A program made the position numbers and the translations under genes. This document shows, piece by piece, positions 31,969-58,803 of a stretch of 64,000 nucleotides of DNA (within the stretch, counting starts at the first letter, position 1; each line of letters opens with the position of its first letter). Where the stretch lies: IMG/VR virus record IMGVR_UViG_3300010399_000031, positions 179,404-243,403 of that record, one strand, 5' to 3'. Below the pieces are notes generated by a model that was not told the DNA's origin, did no database searches, and saw only the letters and a list, made by a program, of their open reading frames with translations.

Positions 31969-32015
31969 GGTTCACACCCCAGAAGCATTTTCTAAAACGC
32001 ACCAATGAGGTAATA

Positions 32016-34274
32016 ATGTCTGCTCTGACCCTTTTCCGGCATAAGGCCCCGAAAGCAACGCCGTCCGCAACCGCATTGGACGATTTCGCCCAGCAACTGC
32101 GTCAACACATCGACGGCGCTGGTGCAACGTTCAAAGATCCCTCGCTTGGCGCGGCTGCTGTTGCGATGGAGAACTTCAACGAAGACGTCGCGGGTCGCAT
32201 GACCGACACGCTGCAAGAGTTGAATGTCGCGCTCGAATCGGTGCTGCAAAACATCGGCATGCCGCTCGCTTCGGCAAACGACAAAGAAGATCCGTATCAC
32301 AAGTTTGGCGTTACCAAGACGCAGATGGAGTCCGCTATCGCTGCCGGCATCATGGCCTCGAACGTGGAAGCCGCGCTCGGCGCAACATATGCGGCCGAAT
32401 CGATGCGTGTTCAGCCGGACACGGCGTTCCGCACGACGAAGGTGATGGATGTGTTCGCGCCGGACCAAGTCTCGCCGGACAAGCGTCTTGCGCTCGAAGC
32501 GTACGACGAGAAGGACAACAAGAACGCGATGGTGTATTCGGTCGCGTACAACATGCAAGCGGCCAAGCAAGACGCGTTTGCTGAAATGTTCTTCCCGACG
32601 GTCGTCGTCACGCCCGATCAGGTTGGCTTCACGATGTCGATCCGCCTGATCAACGTGTACAACGAAGTGCGCCGCGACATCTCGGGCAAGCCCAGTCAGA
32701 ATTTCAACAAGCGCAACATCGTCCAGGCCGTGATCGACCCGACGATTCTGCGCAACGACACGACCCGTATGTACCCGGTCGTGCGTCCGGAAAGCACCGC
32801 CATGTTCGTTTCGTCGGGCGACGTCGCTCCGCGCAACATCACGCTGGATGACGGACAGGTCATCACGACTGCGCCGTTGGCGATGCAAACGGAACTCTCG
32901 CTGATCGCGATTTCGCAGACCGATGCCCTGCTTCAGACCGGCATCATGGATTCGACCGATGCGATCGATACGGCAATCGGCCTGGACAACCTGTACTTGA
33001 AACTCTCGGGTACGGTCAGCGGTACACCCACGACCGAAGTCGTGAAGTTCTCCACGCGGCGTCTGCCCCTTGCGACGTTCAACTACGCTCCGCAAGGCAA
33101 CTACCGCACGATGCTGCTGAACTTCAGCACGACGAGCCTGCTCGTAAACGGCACGACGACGAAGGTCGACGGCTCGACTTCGCAGCTGCTCACGTTGCTC
33201 CAATCGGGCAACTACAACGTGCGACTGGGTGTGTACGTCTCGGGTCAGGTGAACTGCGAACTGGGTGACACCAACATCATGGCGTCGAAGGTTTCGGTGC
33301 AATCGGTGCGCAATGCCGCCGGAGAAGCGCTCGATCTGACGACGGGCGACGGTGCAACGATCGTTGCTCTGTTTGCCAACGCCACGATGATCGGTTACGA
33401 TCTCGAAGCGCGCCGTACGAACAGCAACCGCCGTGAACGCGGTCAGTTGCTCGACACGACGTTCTACAACCAAGTGTACGCAGTGCCGCTGCGGGCTCCG
33501 ATCACGATTCCGCGTCCGCTCACGATCGGCGATGCCAACGATTCGAGCGATCTTGCCGCTCTGATCACGGCAACGCACGTGCGTACGACGAACGCGGCGA
33601 TCGACGAGCTGCTTAATGCAGCGAACGTACTTGAAGCATACGTCTCGAATCTCGACCCGCTCGGTACGATTCCGGACGTGCTCGGTGTGACGCGTTTCCT
33701 CGTGACGCCGTTCTTCGAGCGCAAGACGATCGACGTGGCTGCGGTCATCAACAACCTGACGTCGCAAAATCGTCCGGCGGATCTGTCGGCTGTGATCGTG
33801 AACTACCTGCGCGACACGGTCTACCGCATGTACACGGCGTCGGGCTACAAGGCTGCGGCTGACGCGCTCGCTGGCGGTATCGGTCCGGTTCCGACGGTCA
33901 TCATCGGTACGGATCCGACGATCGCACGCTACATCAATGTGGAAGGCGATCTGCGCACGCTCGGCGGCTCGTTCAACGTGCGTGTTGAGTCGACGCTGAA
34001 CACGAACATGGCTGGTAAGATCGTCGTGTCGTTCGGCGAATTCGGTACGGGCAAGGAAGGTGTGCCCAACCCGATGCACTTCGGTAATATGGCGTGGAAG
34101 CCGGAACTCACGCTCGTGCTGCCGCTGCACCGCAACGGCGCAAACAGCAAGGAACTCACGGTTCAGCCGTCGTTCCTGCACGTCGTGAACCTGCCGGTGA
34201 TGGCCATGTTCGACGTCGTGAACTTGTCGGCCGCTGCGACCGACAAGATCGCTATCGACTTCCACAACGTCTGA
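32016..34274 (+). CDS. major capsid protein precursor (phiKZ gp120-like)
   Basis: 752 aa; 'ALEAYD' maturation site, 'QDAFAEMFFPTVV', 'TNSNRRERG'; extreme codon bias. Confidence 0.93.
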   Translation: MSALTLFRHKAPKATPSATALDDFAQQLRQHIDGAGATFKDPSLGAAAVAMENFNEDVAGRMTDTLQELNVALESVLQNIGMPLASANDKEDPYHKFGVTKTQMESAIAAGIMASNVEAALGATYAAESMRVQPDTAFRTTKVMDVFAPDQVSPDKRLALEAYDEKDNKNAMVYSVAYNMQAAKQDAFAEMFFPTVVVTPDQVGFTMSIRLINVYNEVRRDISGKPSQNFNKRNIVQAVIDPTILRNDTTRMYPVVRPESTAMFVSSGDVAPRNITLDDGQVITTAPLAMQTELSLIAISQTDALLQTGIMDSTDAIDTAIGLDNLYLKLSGTVSGTPTTEVVKFSTRRLPLATFNYAPQGNYRTMLLNFSTTSLLVNGTTTKVDGSTSQLLTLLQSGNYNVRLGVYVSGQVNCELGDTNIMASKVSVQSVRNAAGEALDLTTGDGATIVALFANATMIGYDLEARRTNSNRRERGQLLDTTFYNQVYAVPLRAPITIPRPLTIGDANDSSDLAALITATHVRTTNAAIDELLNAANVLEAYVSNLDPLGTIPDVLGVTRFLVTPFFERKTIDVAAVINNLTSQNRPADLSAVIVNYLRDTVYRMYTASGYKAAADALAGGIGPVPTVIIGTDPTIARYINVEGDLRTLGGSFNVRVESTLNTNMAGKIVVSFGEFGTGKEGVPNPMHFGNMAWKPELTLVLPLHRNGANSKELTVQPSFLHVVNLPVMAMFDVVNLSAAATDKIAIDFHNV

Positions 34275-34281
34275 ACGCAGG

Positions 34282-34398
34282 GCATGGTGAACGTGCATGA
34301 CCTCAATGGCTTCACGCCATACTCGGGGTGACGCTTGGAGTTGAGGTCGTCAGAAGTAAGTAGAGTTTAAGCTTCTGACGCGTTCACCCGAGCCATGC
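34282..34398 (+). ncRNA. structured three-way-junction RNA in the capsid 3' region
   Basis: GGTGAACG/CGTTCACC, TGACCTCAA/TTGAGGTCG, GTCAGAAG/CTTCTGAC, GCATGG/CCATGC. Confidence 0.55.
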
Positions 34399-46909: not shown

Positions 46910-46941
46910 TCGGGTACGAGAACGCAAAAGGAGTGTGTAGT

Positions 46942-47550
46942 ATGCTGACGATGCCGGACGGGGGGGACCCGTTCGCGTCAATCCTCGCCATCGATCCTGG
47001 TACGGATACCCTTGGACTTGCGTGTATTCAGTTCGATTGTCGAACTGGACTCATTGTGGGGTCTGAGGCGCAAACGTATAAAGGTTCAAGAATGGCCAAA
47101 CACAGCTGGGTCGGGGACGTGCATGGTGATCGTTTTGCAAGAATCAATGCTCACCGTATCAACCTCGCACGTCTTTTGAACACCATCCAGCCGGCGTTTC
47201 TTGCATCAGAGTCACCGTTTTTCTCCCGAGCCCAACCACAGGCTTATGGAGCATTAACGGAAGTCGTCTATGCACTGAGGTTGACGATTTTCGAATATGA
47301 TCCACTCATGGAGGTTCAGCTCATCGACCCTCCGTCAGTTAAAAATGCAGTAGGAGCCAAAGGAAATGCTGATAAAGAAAGTGTACGTGCCTATGTACTT
47401 TCTTTAGATGATTTAAAATACAAGGGTCGAGTGCCGATTGATGTGTTAGATGAGCATTCAATCGATGCACTGGCGGTGGCTTATGCGATGTTACTCATGA
47501 TCCGGGTCAATTATTTGTTCTGGAAAGACGGGCGTCTTGAGCCACTTTAA
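46942..47550 (+). CDS. ruvC: RuvC-like Holliday junction resolvase
   Basis: ILAIDPG, ESPF, P.SVKNAVG..G.ADK, EHSIDALAVA. Confidence 0.85.
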   Translation: MLTMPDGGDPFASILAIDPGTDTLGLACIQFDCRTGLIVGSEAQTYKGSRMAKHSWVGDVHGDRFARINAHRINLARLLNTIQPAFLASESPFFSRAQPQAYGALTEVVYALRLTIFEYDPLMEVQLIDPPSVKNAVGAKGNADKESVRAYVLSLDDLKYKGRVPIDVLDEHSIDALAVAYAMLLMIRVNYLFWKDGRLEPL

Positions 47551-50417: not shown

Positions 50418-52037
50418 TCAAGTTTTTAACTGATCGAGGTAGTCTTGATACTCCCTCATCCACTTCAGATTCATGTTCAGCATTTGCCGATCCACCACAA
50501 AATCATGAACTTGCTGATCCCATTTAATCTGGTGGTAATCATACCCAAATTCATTAATGAACGCGCTAACAACATAGCCGTTCACAATCACAGGTGAGCC
50601 TTCCACCACTGGAATAAACACCTGTGTATCCGGATCATAGTTTGGTACCACCACTGGGGTGCGTTTAACAAAACCATGTAATGAGGCAAACTCAGCTGGT
50701 CCCTTTAAGAAACTGTGAGGGTCCTTCAAACCTCGAATCAAACCCATTTCAATTTCTTTGTGAATTTGCACATGATCGTGTACCCACCACCAATCTTTAC
50801 CATCTTGCCTCACCCAGTGCGGATGTTCAGCCGACCACTGGTGGTGTGGATCTTCCTCAAACATCAACAACTTTCGCTCCTCACCCACCCGTGAAACGTG
50901 TAAATGTTTAACCGTGGCTGGACCGGTTGGTCCCATGACTATATCGCCTGCCTGGATCGTCTGAATTTGTTTCCACGACCGATCCGCCATAAGGACGAGT
51001 GATCCCGCCACAAAACACGAAGCACCACCACCACCGCCCGCAGCACCCGTAACAGTCCCAACAAAGATACCGTTCCATTTCACCACAGTTTTATTACCAC
51101 CTGAATCACTGGGCGCACCACCATAGAACAGGGTAAGGTTTAAAGTGAGGTCTTTAAATCGCGGACCCATAATCGGTCGACCATTGATCATGGCAAAAGC
51201 ACACTGATTCCAATCTCCACCCGTATAGATATTACCATTGCGGTCCACCATACCGTTTGCAATGGTAAATCCATTAAAGGTGTATCCCGTTTGTGAATCA
51301 AGAAAGTTAGTGTACTGGTTCCCTGAGAAAGAAAGCTGATTCAAATCAACAAAGACACACGCAATAAATGTGTGAGCGGACGAGCCGGCGAAATCTAAGT
51401 ACCAAAGACTACACTGCCAGTTATTACTGGAGTTAGGTTGAATCGCCGACCAAGGGGCGCCGATGTCGTCGCCGGACCCACTAACTGAAAAAGCACAGTT
51501 ACCCTGGGTGGCCAAAAGATATCCGTTAAGATCGTTTCCGCCGTACGCACGCGTCCAAGACATTTGGGAAATGTCAAGACCATACCCCCAATTACCAGGC
51601 GTATACGCCATGGAGTACGGGGTATTGAAATACGAGTACGAATCGATATACGTTCTTGCGTCGGTCGTTCCCCCGTTTGCCAAATCATAAAACGGGTAAG
51701 CGTTATTGATGGTTCCCTGACCATCTGGGTTTCCGGTGTTGGCTGGGTAAGAACCCGCGGGGGTGTTATCGCTCGGTGTACCTTTAGCCATCGTAGTGAG
51801 GTTAAAGGCAATGTAGGCGCCATTATCGCAATTGAGATCGAAAGCGGCAATCGTCGCCCCGTGAACTGGAGCGACGCCAAAACTCTTCCCGTACCAATAA
51901 CTCCAAGCGTAACGTTGCCCAGGACTTACACCCGCCAATCTTGACAAGAGCGTATTTCCAGCATCAATTGTTCCGCTCTCACGACATTCGGCTTGAGCCT
52001 GACCGATACTGATCGCGCCAGACGTTTGCATCGTCAT
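50418..52037 (-). CDS. tail-fibre-associated protein with C-terminal Hint domain
   Basis: N-terminal 'MQTSGAISIG' fibre-attachment-like motif; GGGGGAS|CFVAGSLVLMAD, SAEHP, VIVNGYVVS. Confidence 0.8.
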   Translation of the reverse strand: MTMQTSGAISIGQAQAECRESGTIDAGNTLLSRLAGVSPGQRYAWSYWYGKSFGVAPVHGATIAAFDLNCDNGAYIAFNLTTMAKGTPSDNTPAGSYPANTGNPDGQGTINNAYPFYDLANGGTTDARTYIDSYSYFNTPYSMAYTPGNWGYGLDISQMSWTRAYGGNDLNGYLLATQGNCAFSVSGSGDDIGAPWSAIQPNSSNNWQCSLWYLDFAGSSAHTFIACVFVDLNQLSFSGNQYTNFLDSQTGYTFNGFTIANGMVDRNGNIYTGGDWNQCAFAMINGRPIMGPRFKDLTLNLTLFYGGAPSDSGGNKTVVKWNGIFVGTVTGAAGGGGGASCFVAGSLVLMADRSWKQIQTIQAGDIVMGPTGPATVKHLHVSRVGEERKLLMFEEDPHHQWSAEHPHWVRQDGKDWWWVHDHVQIHKEIEMGLIRGLKDPHSFLKGPAEFASLHGFVKRTPVVVPNYDPDTQVFIPVVEGSPVIVNGYVVSAFINEFGYDYHQIKWDQQVHDFVVDRQMLNMNLKWMREYQDYLDQLKT

Positions 52038-52049
52038 GATATCTCTCCT

Positions 52050-53447
52050 TTAAGCAGGTATTGATACCGCCATGACATCTGTGACATCCAATTCAGCTAA
52101 CACTTTCCCCCAACCATTGCGTTTAAGGGATGTGATGAGCGTGTCCACTTTTTTGTCAAGCGATTTGACCGCTTCAACGGTGAGGGCGACCATTCTATCG
52201 TACTGTAAAGTGCGATAGTTTTCACCTGAAATGGATAAACCTGTGTGAGGGTCTCGATCCAACACAGCCAGACCTGTGAGTTCTGGAGTCACCTTATAAG
52301 CGTCGCCAGCCAATAAACCCATGTGTCGCCGGGTCGTGTCAGTCCCGGTAAGTTTGGCGGCCAGCTCGTTGTGACGATAAGTCACCCCATTAAGGTGGTG
52401 AATCTTGCTTAACGGATTGGTGATCGGTTCAATATCTTCTTTAAGCCTCTCATCTGACCAATATGCCCAGATATCGTTTGCGCAGTAAATCGTTCCATTT
52501 ACATGAACGTCGCCCAAGGTAACTGTTTGCCCGGCGGCTGCATAAACGTAACCTCCGCTTCCCGGATTGGCTGGAGCCTTCCCGTTGATCTGGTTTTGCA
52601 AAGACGTGGTGGTGCTGTCAATTTGGCTGGAGGTGTATGTACCAACCTGCGTCGCTGTCACCAGGTGGGGATTAGACGTATTGTTTTCATGCGTGGTGAG
52701 TGCTGAGTTCACCGTGTTGATGTTATTCTGAAGCGTGGTTTGCGCCGCGCTTAAATTCGCATCAGACTGCGCCGTGGTGTATGCACCCACTTGCGCTGCT
52801 GTCACTTTGTGCGGGTTGTTAAAATCCGCCAGGTGGTTATTCAATGCGTTTTGCAACGCTTGAATTTGTGAAGCAATCGACGTAGTTCCTAGATCGATAT
52901 ACTTGTAGATCGCATCGTGGGACGCTTCATCGCCTAAGAGGATTGCTTTCGAAATCCGGTCGAGCGCTGCCACCGTGTATTCAAAACCGATCAGGTCTCC
53001 CGCGTCGTGTAGGTGAGCGCTCGGTGCAAACGCAGCGGGTTTGCCGATAATGACAGGCCAAGCCGCAGGGCGATCATCCAGATTCAGATTGTAAATCTGA
53101 TCAATAATTGCTTGCGCCGAAGCTGAATACTCACCCCCAACCACCTGATATTGAAGCGAGATGTTGGCCGACACCGTCTGGTCAGTGATCATGATGATAC
53201 GCATGATCTCCAACCCAGTTTCCACACTCGCCATCGTCTCCAATTCAGCGCAGTAGAACTGATCGGGGGCGAGTGACAAGTTGGTCGCCATATCGGTGAT
53301 GACCAACCCTTGCGTGTAAAACGGACCGTACTCCGGGGCCACCGCTCGAATCTTGCGAGCGGGCATCGACTGAAGTTCCCCGACTACGAGGTTATTCGGA
53401 TTGACGCCCGTCGGATCAAACGGATAGCGGATTACTGGCGTGCTCAT
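52050..53447 (-). CDS. tail fibre protein with intramolecular chaperone (peptidase S74) domain
   Basis: YPFDPTG N-terminus, NPH.VTA.QVG repeats, W|SDERLKEDI autocleavage motif. Confidence 0.85.
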   Translation of the reverse strand: MSTPVIRYPFDPTGVNPNNLVVGELQSMPARKIRAVAPEYGPFYTQGLVITDMATNLSLAPDQFYCAELETMASVETGLEIMRIIMITDQTVSANISLQYQVVGGEYSASAQAIIDQIYNLNLDDRPAAWPVIIGKPAAFAPSAHLHDAGDLIGFEYTVAALDRISKAILLGDEASHDAIYKYIDLGTTSIASQIQALQNALNNHLADFNNPHKVTAAQVGAYTTAQSDANLSAAQTTLQNNINTVNSALTTHENNTSNPHLVTATQVGTYTSSQIDSTTTSLQNQINGKAPANPGSGGYVYAAAGQTVTLGDVHVNGTIYCANDIWAYWSDERLKEDIEPITNPLSKIHHLNGVTYRHNELAAKLTGTDTTRRHMGLLAGDAYKVTPELTGLAVLDRDPHTGLSISGENYRTLQYDRMVALTVEAVKSLDKKVDTLITSLKRNGWGKVLAELDVTDVMAVSIPA

Positions 53448-57174: not shown

Positions 57175-58803
57175 TTAAGATGCGGGTACCGACGTCTTCA
57201 TCGAAACAACTCGGATGTTGCTATACATCCCCGCCCAAATGCCAATCGCATCATTGACCTGAATGACGGTTGCATGCCGAAAAGCCAATTCGCTTTCCAT
57301 CCACGTAACAAGACTAACCTTCGGATTGAGCTTCTCCAGACGCCGTAGTCCATTACGATCCAGCATGTCAATGCCAAGAGTGAGTTTAAGCGACTCTTGA
57401 TAAAGTTCACCCGTTGCAGCGTCTGGCTTATAGTTAGCCAGTACGTCTAATGCCGCGAACCCGACGCAGTAATCATCCTTGAGCACGGTAAGTGTCGTGG
57501 ATTCCTTCTTACTGGTCTTGACAACTGTCTCATAAAGAATAGGTGTCAAATCCGTAATTGCTAACTCGGATACCCCAGACAGATACTGTTCGAGTTTCTG
57601 TCCGAGAAATGCAATGTTCTCCACGGCCCGATAAGCGAGCTTTGCGGGACGAAATTGCGTGGTGAGTGGTTCGGCATCTGCTCCCACCAAATCCAGCAAA
57701 TATGGATTGGATCGATAGGTGGCAAGATGACCGTAGTTGCTCAACTCCTTGTGAACCACACTGCTAAAGACATTGCCGATCAACATCTTCATGAGGTTAT
57801 CGGTGTTATCCGCCAAATTCGATTGATGATCGAAAATCGTCTCGATCACCGGGTCAGGCGTATGTAACCGAACCACGGCAAAGGCGCCATCGGCTGAACG
57901 CATGCCATGTTCTCCGTCTTCCTTACCATGATTTCCCAAGTAGTATTCACCTGGCGTCAGATGTGTGCGACGGGTATTGAAGTACAGATTTTGATGAGAG
58001 ATAAACGGGTGCTTGTTCGACTCGTACCCCCAGTAGCCCTCGGGTGCACTCACGATCACTTCATTTTTTACGATTCCAGACAGCGAGTGGTTAGTACCGA
58101 TGGCGGCCCAACGATCGGCTTTGACATTACCCAGAATATCCGAGTGAGCCCGCACCCAACCAAACTTCACAGTGATACCTTTAGCACGCAATTCATCGGT
58201 GAGATCCGAGAGCTTGCGCCAGTATTTCAGATTGGTGATCTCACTACCATCGGATCTTTTCCACCCATGGCGTTTCCAACTCCCAACCCAGCTTTCCATA
58301 CCTTTACGGACGTACTCGCTGTCAGTGAAGATGCTCACTTGCTTGATAGCAAACTGCTCGGCGTGACGCAAACCATGGTAGGCGGCATCTAGCTCTGCAA
58401 TGTTGTTCGACACTTTGATACCGCGCGCCATGTCGATTTCGTACGAACCGAAACCGTCGATATAATGCAGCGGTGTGACGGCATTGACGCTATCGTCTTC
58501 TCCAAGGGTTTTGAGTTGCGCAACCTCAATCTTGGTCATGTAACCGTCAGAGGTAAGAATATGGTCGGGGTTACCTGAACCTTTTTTCGGTACTTCAAAC
58601 GAGTAGAGATACCCGTGTAGTCCCCAACCACCGTAACCGGGATTGGGGATGCAAGAGCCATCGGTCCACAGACACATACCTTGCAACACAACGGGTGCAG
58701 GCTGCTCTTGTTTGGATTCAGATGCGGCTTTGCGCTCTGCTTCAACAGCGGCGATATCATCGGGATGATTCGACTGATGGTATCCTTGTTCTTTATTACA
58801 CAT
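57175..58803 (-). CDS. rnhA: ribonuclease HI with C-terminal extension (phiKZ gp155-like)
   Basis: WTDGSC.PNPG.GGWG, NNIAEL, TDSEYV, WVRAH..GN..AD. Confidence 0.9.
   Translation of the reverse strand: MCNKEQGYHQSNHPDDIAAVEAERKAASESKQEQPAPVVLQGMCLWTDGSCIPNPGYGGWGLHGYLYSFEVPKKGSGNPDHILTSDGYMTKIEVAQLKTLGEDDSVNAVTPLHYIDGFGSYEIDMARGIKVSNNIAELDAAYHGLRHAEQFAIKQVSIFTDSEYVRKGMESWVGSWKRHGWKRSDGSEITNLKYWRKLSDLTDELRAKGITVKFGWVRAHSDILGNVKADRWAAIGTNHSLSGIVKNEVIVSAPEGYWGYESNKHPFISHQNLYFNTRRTHLTPGEYYLGNHGKEDGEHGMRSADGAFAVVRLHTPDPVIETIFDHQSNLADNTDNLMKMLIGNVFSSVVHKELSNYGHLATYRSNPYLLDLVGADAEPLTTQFRPAKLAYRAVENIAFLGQKLEQYLSGVSELAITDLTPILYETVVKTSKKESTTLTVLKDDYCVGFAALDVLANYKPDAATGELYQESLKLTLGIDMLDRNGLRRLEKLNPKVSLVTWMESELAFRHATVIQVNDAIGIWAGMYSNIRVVSMKTSVPAS

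Follow-up and report, generated by a model that had tools for sequence, protein, structure and literature searches.

The window analysed in this study, a stretch of 64,000 nucleotides, corresponds to bases 179404-243403 of a 243,403-bp IMG/VR virus record (IMGVR_UViG_3300010399_000031), a jumbo phage estimated to be 81% complete. The minus strand of the window carries a row of three co-oriented fibre-type genes with intergenic gaps of 24 and 12 nt, and the third and last of them, P0001 (50418..52037), encodes a protein ending in a Hint domain. The gene is an open frame without stops, and its 539-residue product (59.1 kDa) is composed of an N-terminal anchor, a variable centre, a Gly linker, the Hint module and a C-terminal helix. 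The original prediction, made from the letters of the window and its open reading frames (ORFs), had assigned a C-terminal Hint domain to this tail-fibre-operon protein, and the structural analysis described below supports that assignment.

The Hint module and the architecture of P0001

A word search recovered 21 relatives of P0001 (411-839 aa), and the C-terminal 200 residues of 22 sequences were aligned. This alignment, A2, served as the profile for the PDB and HMMER searches and as the input of AlphaFold2 (AF2). Against the PDB, the A2 profile matched blocks A-B of 8W20_A, a 1368-aa "Intein C-terminal splicing domain-containing protein" (E 1.7e-9), and the intein PI-SceI (1e-6). The AF2 model of residues 333-539 reached a predicted local distance difference test (pLDDT) of 84 and a predicted template modelling score (pTM) of 0.84, with pLDDT below 50 in the linker stretch at model residues 1-6 (333-338). 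Foldseek (probability 1.00) returned 29 PDB matches at E<=1e-3, all of them Hint-fold among the matches listed, in the order Tetrahymena BUBL1 BIL2, the Clostridium thermocellum BIL domain, Prp8, the gp41-1 and DnaB inteins, Vint and Hedgehog. The exhaustive VIA structural search over 48,161 chains gave the same picture, the top 28 rows (Z 8.2-15.3) all being Hint domains: BIL2 scored 15.3 (model residues 2-165), the Clostridium BIL domain 13.4, inteins 12-13, Hedgehog C17 12.1 (9-162) and Vint 9.1. Because the listed Foldseek matches of the AF2 model and its top 28 VIA rows are Hint domains, the Hint fold of the P0001 C-terminus, as modelled, is certain. The sequence family searches were far less telling. 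Pfam gave sub-threshold matches restricted to block A (Hom_end_hint, E 2e-5; Vint, 6e-5; Hedgehog Hint, 0.17), the PHROG scan of P0001 gave no match, and the only hit of the NCBIfam scan, to an intein-containing radical SAM model, was sub-threshold and negligible (E 0.065). The features that define the Hint superfamily, i.e., the fold, the Cys of block A at position 1 and the Thr/Ser-x-x-His of block B, are all found in P0001.

The Hint fold covers residues 341-498 (50544..51017; all features of P0001 lie on the minus strand) according to the AF2 model and its structural matches. It begins with Cys341 (codon TGT, 51015..51017), the block A nucleophile, which aligns with residue 1 of inteins, including PI-SceI, and of BIL domains. 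This codon lies directly past the Gly linker, at 51017-51015 as had been read from the sequence. The flexible linker itself, TGAAGGGGGAS (residues 330-340; 51018..51050), ends in Ser340, the -1 residue of the predicted scissile bond Ser340-Cys341. Block B, likewise located correctly by the first reading, is W-S-A-E-H at residues 401-405 (50823..50837), in which S402-A-E-H405 is the equivalent of TxxH and a clade-specific Glu stands beside the His; in the alignment with PDB 8w20, this stretch falls on block B of that chain. The last Hint strand, N-G-Y-V-V-S-A (residues 486-492; 50562..50582), stands where inteins have His-Asn ahead of Cys. The intein His-Asn had been noted as missing, and indeed the strand runs V-V-S-A-F without it. 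A closing motif specific to the clade, D-Y-x4-W (residues 500-506; 50520..50540), follows, and its Asp, Tyr and Trp are invariant in 22 close homologues. The tail had been estimated at about 37 extra residues, a figure that needs correction: 47 residues lie past Ala492. Since the Hint fold extends to about residue 498 and the conserved D-Y-x4-W occupies 500-506, the truly extra part amounts to about 33 residues (507-539; 50421..50519). This segment is a predicted amphipathic helix (model residues 174-206, pLDDT 78-91) and is found in the jumbo-phage clade only. Prediction of the Hint and helix module as a homotrimer scored 0.00, which is evidence neither way.

The rest of P0001 is divided into two parts of very different conservation. 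The anchor (residues 1-56; 51870..52037), three short helices presumed to dock the protein to the fibre, is 50-66% identical to its homologues, and the Hint module (residues 341-506) is 55-73% identical, whereas the centre (residues 57-333) shows 20-28% identity and only half of it can be aligned. The anchor motif, S-G-x-I-S-I-G-Q-A ... L-A-G ... W-Y-G-K-S, extends over about 55 residues and is common to jumbo phages and the T7-like Providencia phage PSTNGR1, in which it starts the ORF behind the fibre gene. It also starts gp76 of Ralstonia phage FLC4-3B, a protein of 185 aa at the same genomic position that carries no Hint domain. The motif was located at 51870-52037 of the window and at L002:4557-5510 and L003:6001-6558 of the compared loci. 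The N-terminal motif has the behaviour of a portable peptide that docks secondary receptor-binding proteins. The variable central domain (residues 57-329; 51051..51869) is presumed to be the receptor-binding part. The word search with the N-terminal part of P0001 found relatives for the first ~60 residues and none for the centre, and the central domain has no Pfam or PHROG match. AF2 modelling of residues 1-340 from 18 sequences gave a pLDDT of 40 overall and about 30-45 in the centre, with the anchor as the sole part at 52-81, and no fold was assigned. A search of the ESM Atlas yielded weak leads (scores <=0.80) to gp38 and Gly-rich adhesins, which were not used as evidence. A receptor-binding or adhesin role is a reasonable inference from the gene position, the mosaic architecture and the family context. 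The conserved-variable-conserved mosaic of P0001 is, at the level of sequence, the pattern of S74-bearing fibres.

A clade of C-terminal Hint modules on phage fibre proteins

The HMMER search with A2 against 1.84 billion representative sequences returned 2965 proteins at E<=1e-3, of which 118 reached E<=1e-30. The clade statistics are based on 151 proteins, namely the 150 best representatives and P0001. One complete module is present in 120 of the 151, with a median of 7 residues between its end and the C-terminus, and the N-terminal parts range from 0 to 2395 aa; these 120 share no more than 50% mutual identity. The catalytic positions are nevertheless almost perfectly kept. Cys1 is found in all 118 representatives having a residue there, followed by Phe in 117. 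Over the 120 modules, residue -1 is mostly Thr (50), Ser (40) or Cys (18), with Gly frequent at -2 and -3; block B has Trp in 101, Ser/Thr in 119, Glu in 111 and His in 118; and the last strand N-G-Y-V-V has its Gly in 112 and its Tyr in 110. The positions past this strand are G/S/T/A, then A/G/S, then G/F/S, and never His-Asn, and the closing motif, about 8 residues further on, has Asp in 101, Tyr in 110 and Trp in 109. The same profile also found tandem Hint arrays, which end V-H-N-K ahead of the next Cys. Since these arrays retain the His-Asn in the same search, its loss is a property of the clade and not a search artefact. The arrays were seen in very long proteins (P0037, P0044, P0063, P0101 and P0170) with 4-7 direct tandem Hints, each ending V-H-N-K-G-G before Cys-Phe, and in P0170 one HN-type Hint is joined to a terminal module of the phage-fibre Hint clade. 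Most matches in bacterial genomes (Streptomyces and others; 22-sequence alignment) were set aside: they cover blocks A-B only and are generic Hint domains outside the phage-fibre clade.

The N-terminal parts of the clade members rarely match any family. Those that could be named are tail-fibre PHROGs, collagen repeats, Gly_rich_2, gp38 adhesin, tail collar and lambda J tip, and three have the N-terminal region of the shufflon (PilV adhesin). The linkers before Cys1 are Gly-rich, Pro-rich or of the CxCxCxC type. Among 50,697 cultured-phage records, four encode the module, and they belong to the Achromobacter phages JWF (two records) and 2-1 and to Providencia phage PSTNGR1; the Hint gene lies directly past the tail tip/hub in the Achromobacter phages and past the fibre gene in PSTNGR1. 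The clade is therefore broad, with at least 118 clusters at 50% identity, yet it is known from three cultured phages only. One GenBank record labels a clade member as "Hom_end-associated Hint family protein". A literature search for a Hint or intein-like domain in phage tail fibres or receptor-binding proteins found none, although its coverage was not exhaustive. On these sequence comparisons, the module is best described as a distinct uncurated Hint clade, specialised for the C-terminal ends of fibre and adhesin proteins of phages. The clade merits a curated model, given that its members are now hypothetical or mislabelled "Hom_end-associated Hint".

A linker of the form Cys-x-Cys-x-Cys-x-Cys (e.g., N-C-N-C-D-C-N-C-S) precedes Cys1 in about 35 of 118 representatives, in the place where P0001 has Gly5. 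Its carriers include P0036, P0038, P0118, P0123, P0130 and the protein of Achromobacter phage 2-1 (L001:4083-5525). Such a linker could form a metal-binding or cross-linked fibre tip that is bared by cleavage. In JWF-like siphophages, the genes after that of the Cys-linker Hint protein encode a conserved 240-aa protein and a radical SAM enzyme (L001:5512-7589; L119:7439-9528), a neighbourhood which suggests a possible enzymatic modification of the Cys-rich tip. A further locus, L118, has an Asp_decarbox-like gene and a 239-aa gene after the Hint gene. None of these neighbours is present in the window.

Relation to known Hint domains and to the S74 chaperone

The domain works like the non-splicing Hedgehog/Vint/BIL class, yet it fails the curated test of each (PF01079, PF14623 and PF13403). 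The module had been proposed to be Hedgehog-type, and this membership did not hold: the PF01079 match is at E 0.17, BIL domains and inteins are structurally as close or closer (Z 15.3 and 13.4 vs 12.1), and the -1 residue is not Gly. P0001 scores 11.9 bits with PF01079 against a cut-off of 29.7, and the best E value in the clade is 0.0019. There are also features in common with Hedgehog. Both have a C-terminal Hint domain that starts with Cys-Phe, lacks His-Asn and is limited to an N-S acyl shift and N-terminal release (predicted for the phage module), the folds match (1AT0, Z 12.1), and the jumbo-phage clade has an extra segment past the Hint domain. The vertebrate Hedgehog start, C-F-P-G-S, is near the phage clade consensus C-F-P-A-G-S. 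On the other hand, the -1 residue of the phage clade is Ser, Thr or Cys rather than Gly, and its block B is S-x-E-H instead of T-x-x-H with Pro-Ala. No sterol-recognition region of about 60-70 residues is seen in the phage clade as a whole, in which the tail has a median of 7 residues and in P0001 is one 33-residue helix, and the metazoan setting of Hedgehog differs from that of a prokaryotic virus.

The nearest solved folds are BIL domains (BIL2, 6TMM/6Y75; C. thermocellum, 2LWY), with a root-mean-square deviation of 2.6 Å over 143 and 127 aligned residues. Like the phage module, these are non-mobile Hint domains within variable proteins of the secreted or surface type and have Cys1 and the block-B His. 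However, the solved BIL constructs have a C-terminal Asn (the entry titles give N143A), which no phage clade member has, and the phage module is strictly C-terminal and closes with D-Y-x4-W. Hint_2 (PF13403), the model of B-type BIL domains, was hit in 12 of 22 clade members with a best E value of 0.013; neither a curated match nor the His-Asn of A-type domains was found.

Vint (PF14623; PDB 8R2C) is also a C-terminal non-splicing Hint domain, the second-best Pfam match and a fold match at Z 9.1, but the isolated P0001 module scores 23.4 bits against a cut-off of 27. The Vint domains of eukaryotic proteins are preceded by a von Willebrand A domain; in P0001 no von Willebrand A match was found and no Pfam domain reaches its cut-off. 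For PT-HINT, the likeness lies in the best solved-chain sequence match, 8W20_A (E 1.7e-9), which covers blocks A-B including H-P-Y-W. PT-HINT domains are autoproteolytic release modules of filamentous proteins, some of them with tail-fibre repeats, and stand directly ahead of the C-terminal toxin that they release (PMC3482391), whereas the phage module is followed by a short tail only. The Pfam scans of P0001 and the clade gave no PT-HINT match.

A comparison of another kind is offered by the fibre gene upstream of P0001. This gene, P0002 (52050..53447, minus strand; 465 aa), matches tail-fibre PHROGs and carries Peptidase_S74 (PF13884) at residues 331-390 (52278-52457), with 49.8 bits against a cut-off of 22 (E 4.1e-13) and the Ser-Lys dyad motif S-D-E-R-L-K. 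The claim that the adjacent fibre uses an S74 chaperone is thus borne out. No S74 match was found in P0001 itself by the Pfam scan, and an S74-like domain in P0001 was rejected. The S74 domain and the Hint module have in common the extreme C-terminal position on fibres, the conserved-variable-conserved mosaic and the predicted self-removal. They differ in fold and chemistry, S74 acting by Ser-Lys dyad hydrolysis within a trimer and the Hint module, as predicted, by a Cys thioester. The chaperone function of S74 has been demonstrated (PMC7824862, PMC3742443), while that of the Hint module is inferred only.

Fate of the predicted thioester

We consider it fairly probable that P0001 is a modular tail-fibre accessory protein or adhesin whose catalytically competent Hint domain is a self-removing C-terminal pro-domain. 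The domain is probably active, to judge from its conserved residues: Cys1 and the block-B His are invariant across very divergent hosts, which favours catalysis over scaffolding. After folding, Cys341 would attack the carbonyl of Ser340 in an N-S acyl shift, helped by His405 of block B. The absence of a C-terminal Asn and of a +1 nucleophile means that no branched intermediate can form and splicing is impossible, so the thioester must be resolved by an external nucleophile. The view that only the thioester and N-terminal cleavage half of the intein reaction is retained therefore stands, as far as the lack of His-Asn and of a +1 nucleophile goes. Hydrolysis or thiolysis is the parsimonious reading: water or a small thiol would resolve the thioester, with Glu404 and/or Asp500 as a possible general base. 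The Glu beside the His and the D-Y...W motif are candidates for activating the resolving nucleophile. N-terminal cleavage of P0001 is considered most likely, and it would release a 35.9-kDa mature protein ending in Ser340 and a 23.2-kDa Hint fragment. Until assembly, the module would hold, fold or cap the distal end, in parallel with the S74 domain of the neighbouring fibre but by thioester chemistry. The Hint-less relatives of the N-terminal part, such as FLC4-3B gp76, suggest that the protein, once mature and functional, no longer contains the module.

Several points weigh against this reading. Modelling of the N-terminal domain failed (pLDDT 40), so the term adhesin rests on context. D-Y-x4-W or Glu404 could serve a transfer reaction instead of hydrolysis. 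Hint precursors such as that of Hedgehog can stay uncleaved without an added nucleophile, and spontaneous hydrolysis is for this reason not guaranteed. The chaperone or capping role is proposed by analogy with S74 only. For no clade member did the literature yield an experimental or proteomic record of cleavage, and searches on the proteomics of Achromobacter phage JWF and Providencia phage PSTNGR1 likewise gave no relevant record.

The original prediction went further and proposed that the adhesin might be ligated to a small molecule or partner. In such a Hedgehog- or BUBL-like transfer, a specific nucleophile would attack the Cys341 thioester and the new C-terminus of the adhesin would be covalently ligated to it; the candidates are a small molecule, a group on the host surface or a lysine of another virion protein, such as the fibre or the DUF7941 product encoded downstream. 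The chemistry allows a thioester with no competing Asn cyclisation, and the flexible Gly-rich tail ahead of the scissile bond looks like a conjugation tail. The best structural match, BIL2 (Z 15.3), comes from the BUBL locus (6TMM/6Y75), whose N-terminal ubiquitin-like domain is reportedly conjugated to lysines. The invariant Asp, Tyr, Trp and Glu specific to the clade have no assigned role and might serve here, and in the jumbo-phage clade the 33-residue helix occupies the position of the Hedgehog sterol-recognition region. But this helix is specific to one lineage, and most clade members end about 7 residues past the module and hence have no adduct-recognition region. No partner gene is conserved either, the neighbour being DUF7941 in jumbo phages, the 240-aa protein and radical SAM enzyme in JWF-like phages and small ORFs in T7-like ones. 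The Pfam Hedgehog Hint model does not recognise the module, and structural similarity is no proof of function. We therefore regard transfer as unlikely. The wider idea that phages use a splicing-incompetent Hint thioester at the fibre tip for covalent chemistry, be it isopeptide or ester ligation, tip cross-linking or a reaction with the host surface, appears quite unlikely. If the thioester does serve ligation, it would represent a new covalent assembly or adsorption chemistry in viruses, equivalent to the cholesteroylation of Hedgehog or the conjugation of BUBL.

It is similarly doubtful that the Hint domain does not cleave, or is latent, and is kept in the virion as a structural tip domain or as a thioester "warhead" that fires on a nucleophile at adsorption. 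In its favour, Hint precursors may persist where no external nucleophile is present, as is known for Hedgehog-C, conservation within P0001 is highest in the module, as expected of a function in the particle, and the closing motif and helix are conserved within the jumbo-phage clade. Against this, the invariant residues are exactly those of the acyl shift (Cys1 and the block-B His), relatives of the N-terminal part occur without any Hint domain, and the conservation of this end is unlike the variation that is normal for receptor-binding tips.

A true or decaying intein or BIL insertion, or a pre-toxin HINT domain freeing a C-terminal cargo, is most improbable: although the nearest Pfam matches are of the intein type (Hom_end_hint, E 2e-5), the best PDB sequence match is the 1368-aa intein C-terminal splicing domain protein and the same profile found the tandem HN-type arrays, the module lacks His-Asn, a +1 Cys/Ser/Thr and any homing endonuclease, the clade has no C-extein (median tail 7 residues), the 47-residue tail of P0001 is a single helix without a family match, and the module occupies the same place on unrelated N-terminal parts, whereas mobile inteins target conserved sites. 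A true intein was accordingly rejected for this terminal module lacking His-Asn, a +1 nucleophile, a C-extein and an endonuclease domain, and so was a PT-HINT toxin cassette, only 47 residues following in P0001 and a median of 7 in the clade.

To our knowledge, the self-removing C-terminal domains of phage fibres have been known so far essentially as S74 chaperones. If the Hint domain is indeed a self-removing pro-domain, a widespread module based on a Hint thioester would add an independent route to fibre maturation. It would also explain how diverse receptor-binding parts can be exchanged while the anchor on one side and the terminal module on the other stay conserved, and the module would need to be respected in host-range engineering. 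A natural Hint domain that cleaves at its N-terminus only, without extein constraints, would be a candidate for use in generating thioesters and ligating proteins.

The fibre operon and its surroundings

The first fibre gene of the operon, P0003 (53472..55208, minus strand), encodes a 578-aa protein with matches to the phrog_2163 and phrog_13857 tail proteins (E 1e-80 to 1e-86), and it has an N-terminal domain in common with P0002. Downstream of P0001 lies P0004 (49668..50264, minus strand), which encodes a DUF7941 virion protein (PF25613, E 3.8e-21; phrog_1037). The gene order fibre, fibre with S74, Hint protein and DUF7941 was found again in related metagenomic jumbo-phage contigs. The DUF7941 neighbour holds the same position in the related jumbo-phage loci L005 and L007, and in the window, as in L005, L007 and L008, the Hint gene is the last of the fibre operon. 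In the fibre operon of one close relative (L005:8324-10391), inserted genes for a TPR-sulfotransferase and an APS kinase separate the Hint gene from that of DUF7941. Megablast of the fibre operon against the 50,697 phage records gave no match, and a promoter and terminator scan gave results at chance level only.

The relatives of this phage point to Burkholderiaceae hosts, as far as protein similarity can indicate: the N-terminus of P0001 is similar to proteins of Ralstonia and Burkholderia jumbo phages, and a contig of a Caballeronia arationis assembly (NZ_FCOG02000011.1, 143,740 bp; L010 = L095), which is also an IMG/VR virus, encodes a Hint module of 46% identity. Elsewhere in the window, the region 31992-34298 is GC-rich (0.594 vs about 0.49 in the remainder) and contains two long ORFs of 768 and 752 aa on opposite strands, overlapping almost fully; the minus-strand product of this pair has no PHROG match. 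The structural block is flanked by a RuvC-like resolvase (46933-47550, plus strand) and an RNase H-type ribonuclease (57175-58803, minus strand), neighbours that also occur elsewhere, RuvC in Ralstonia phage FLC4-3B and RNase H in L005.

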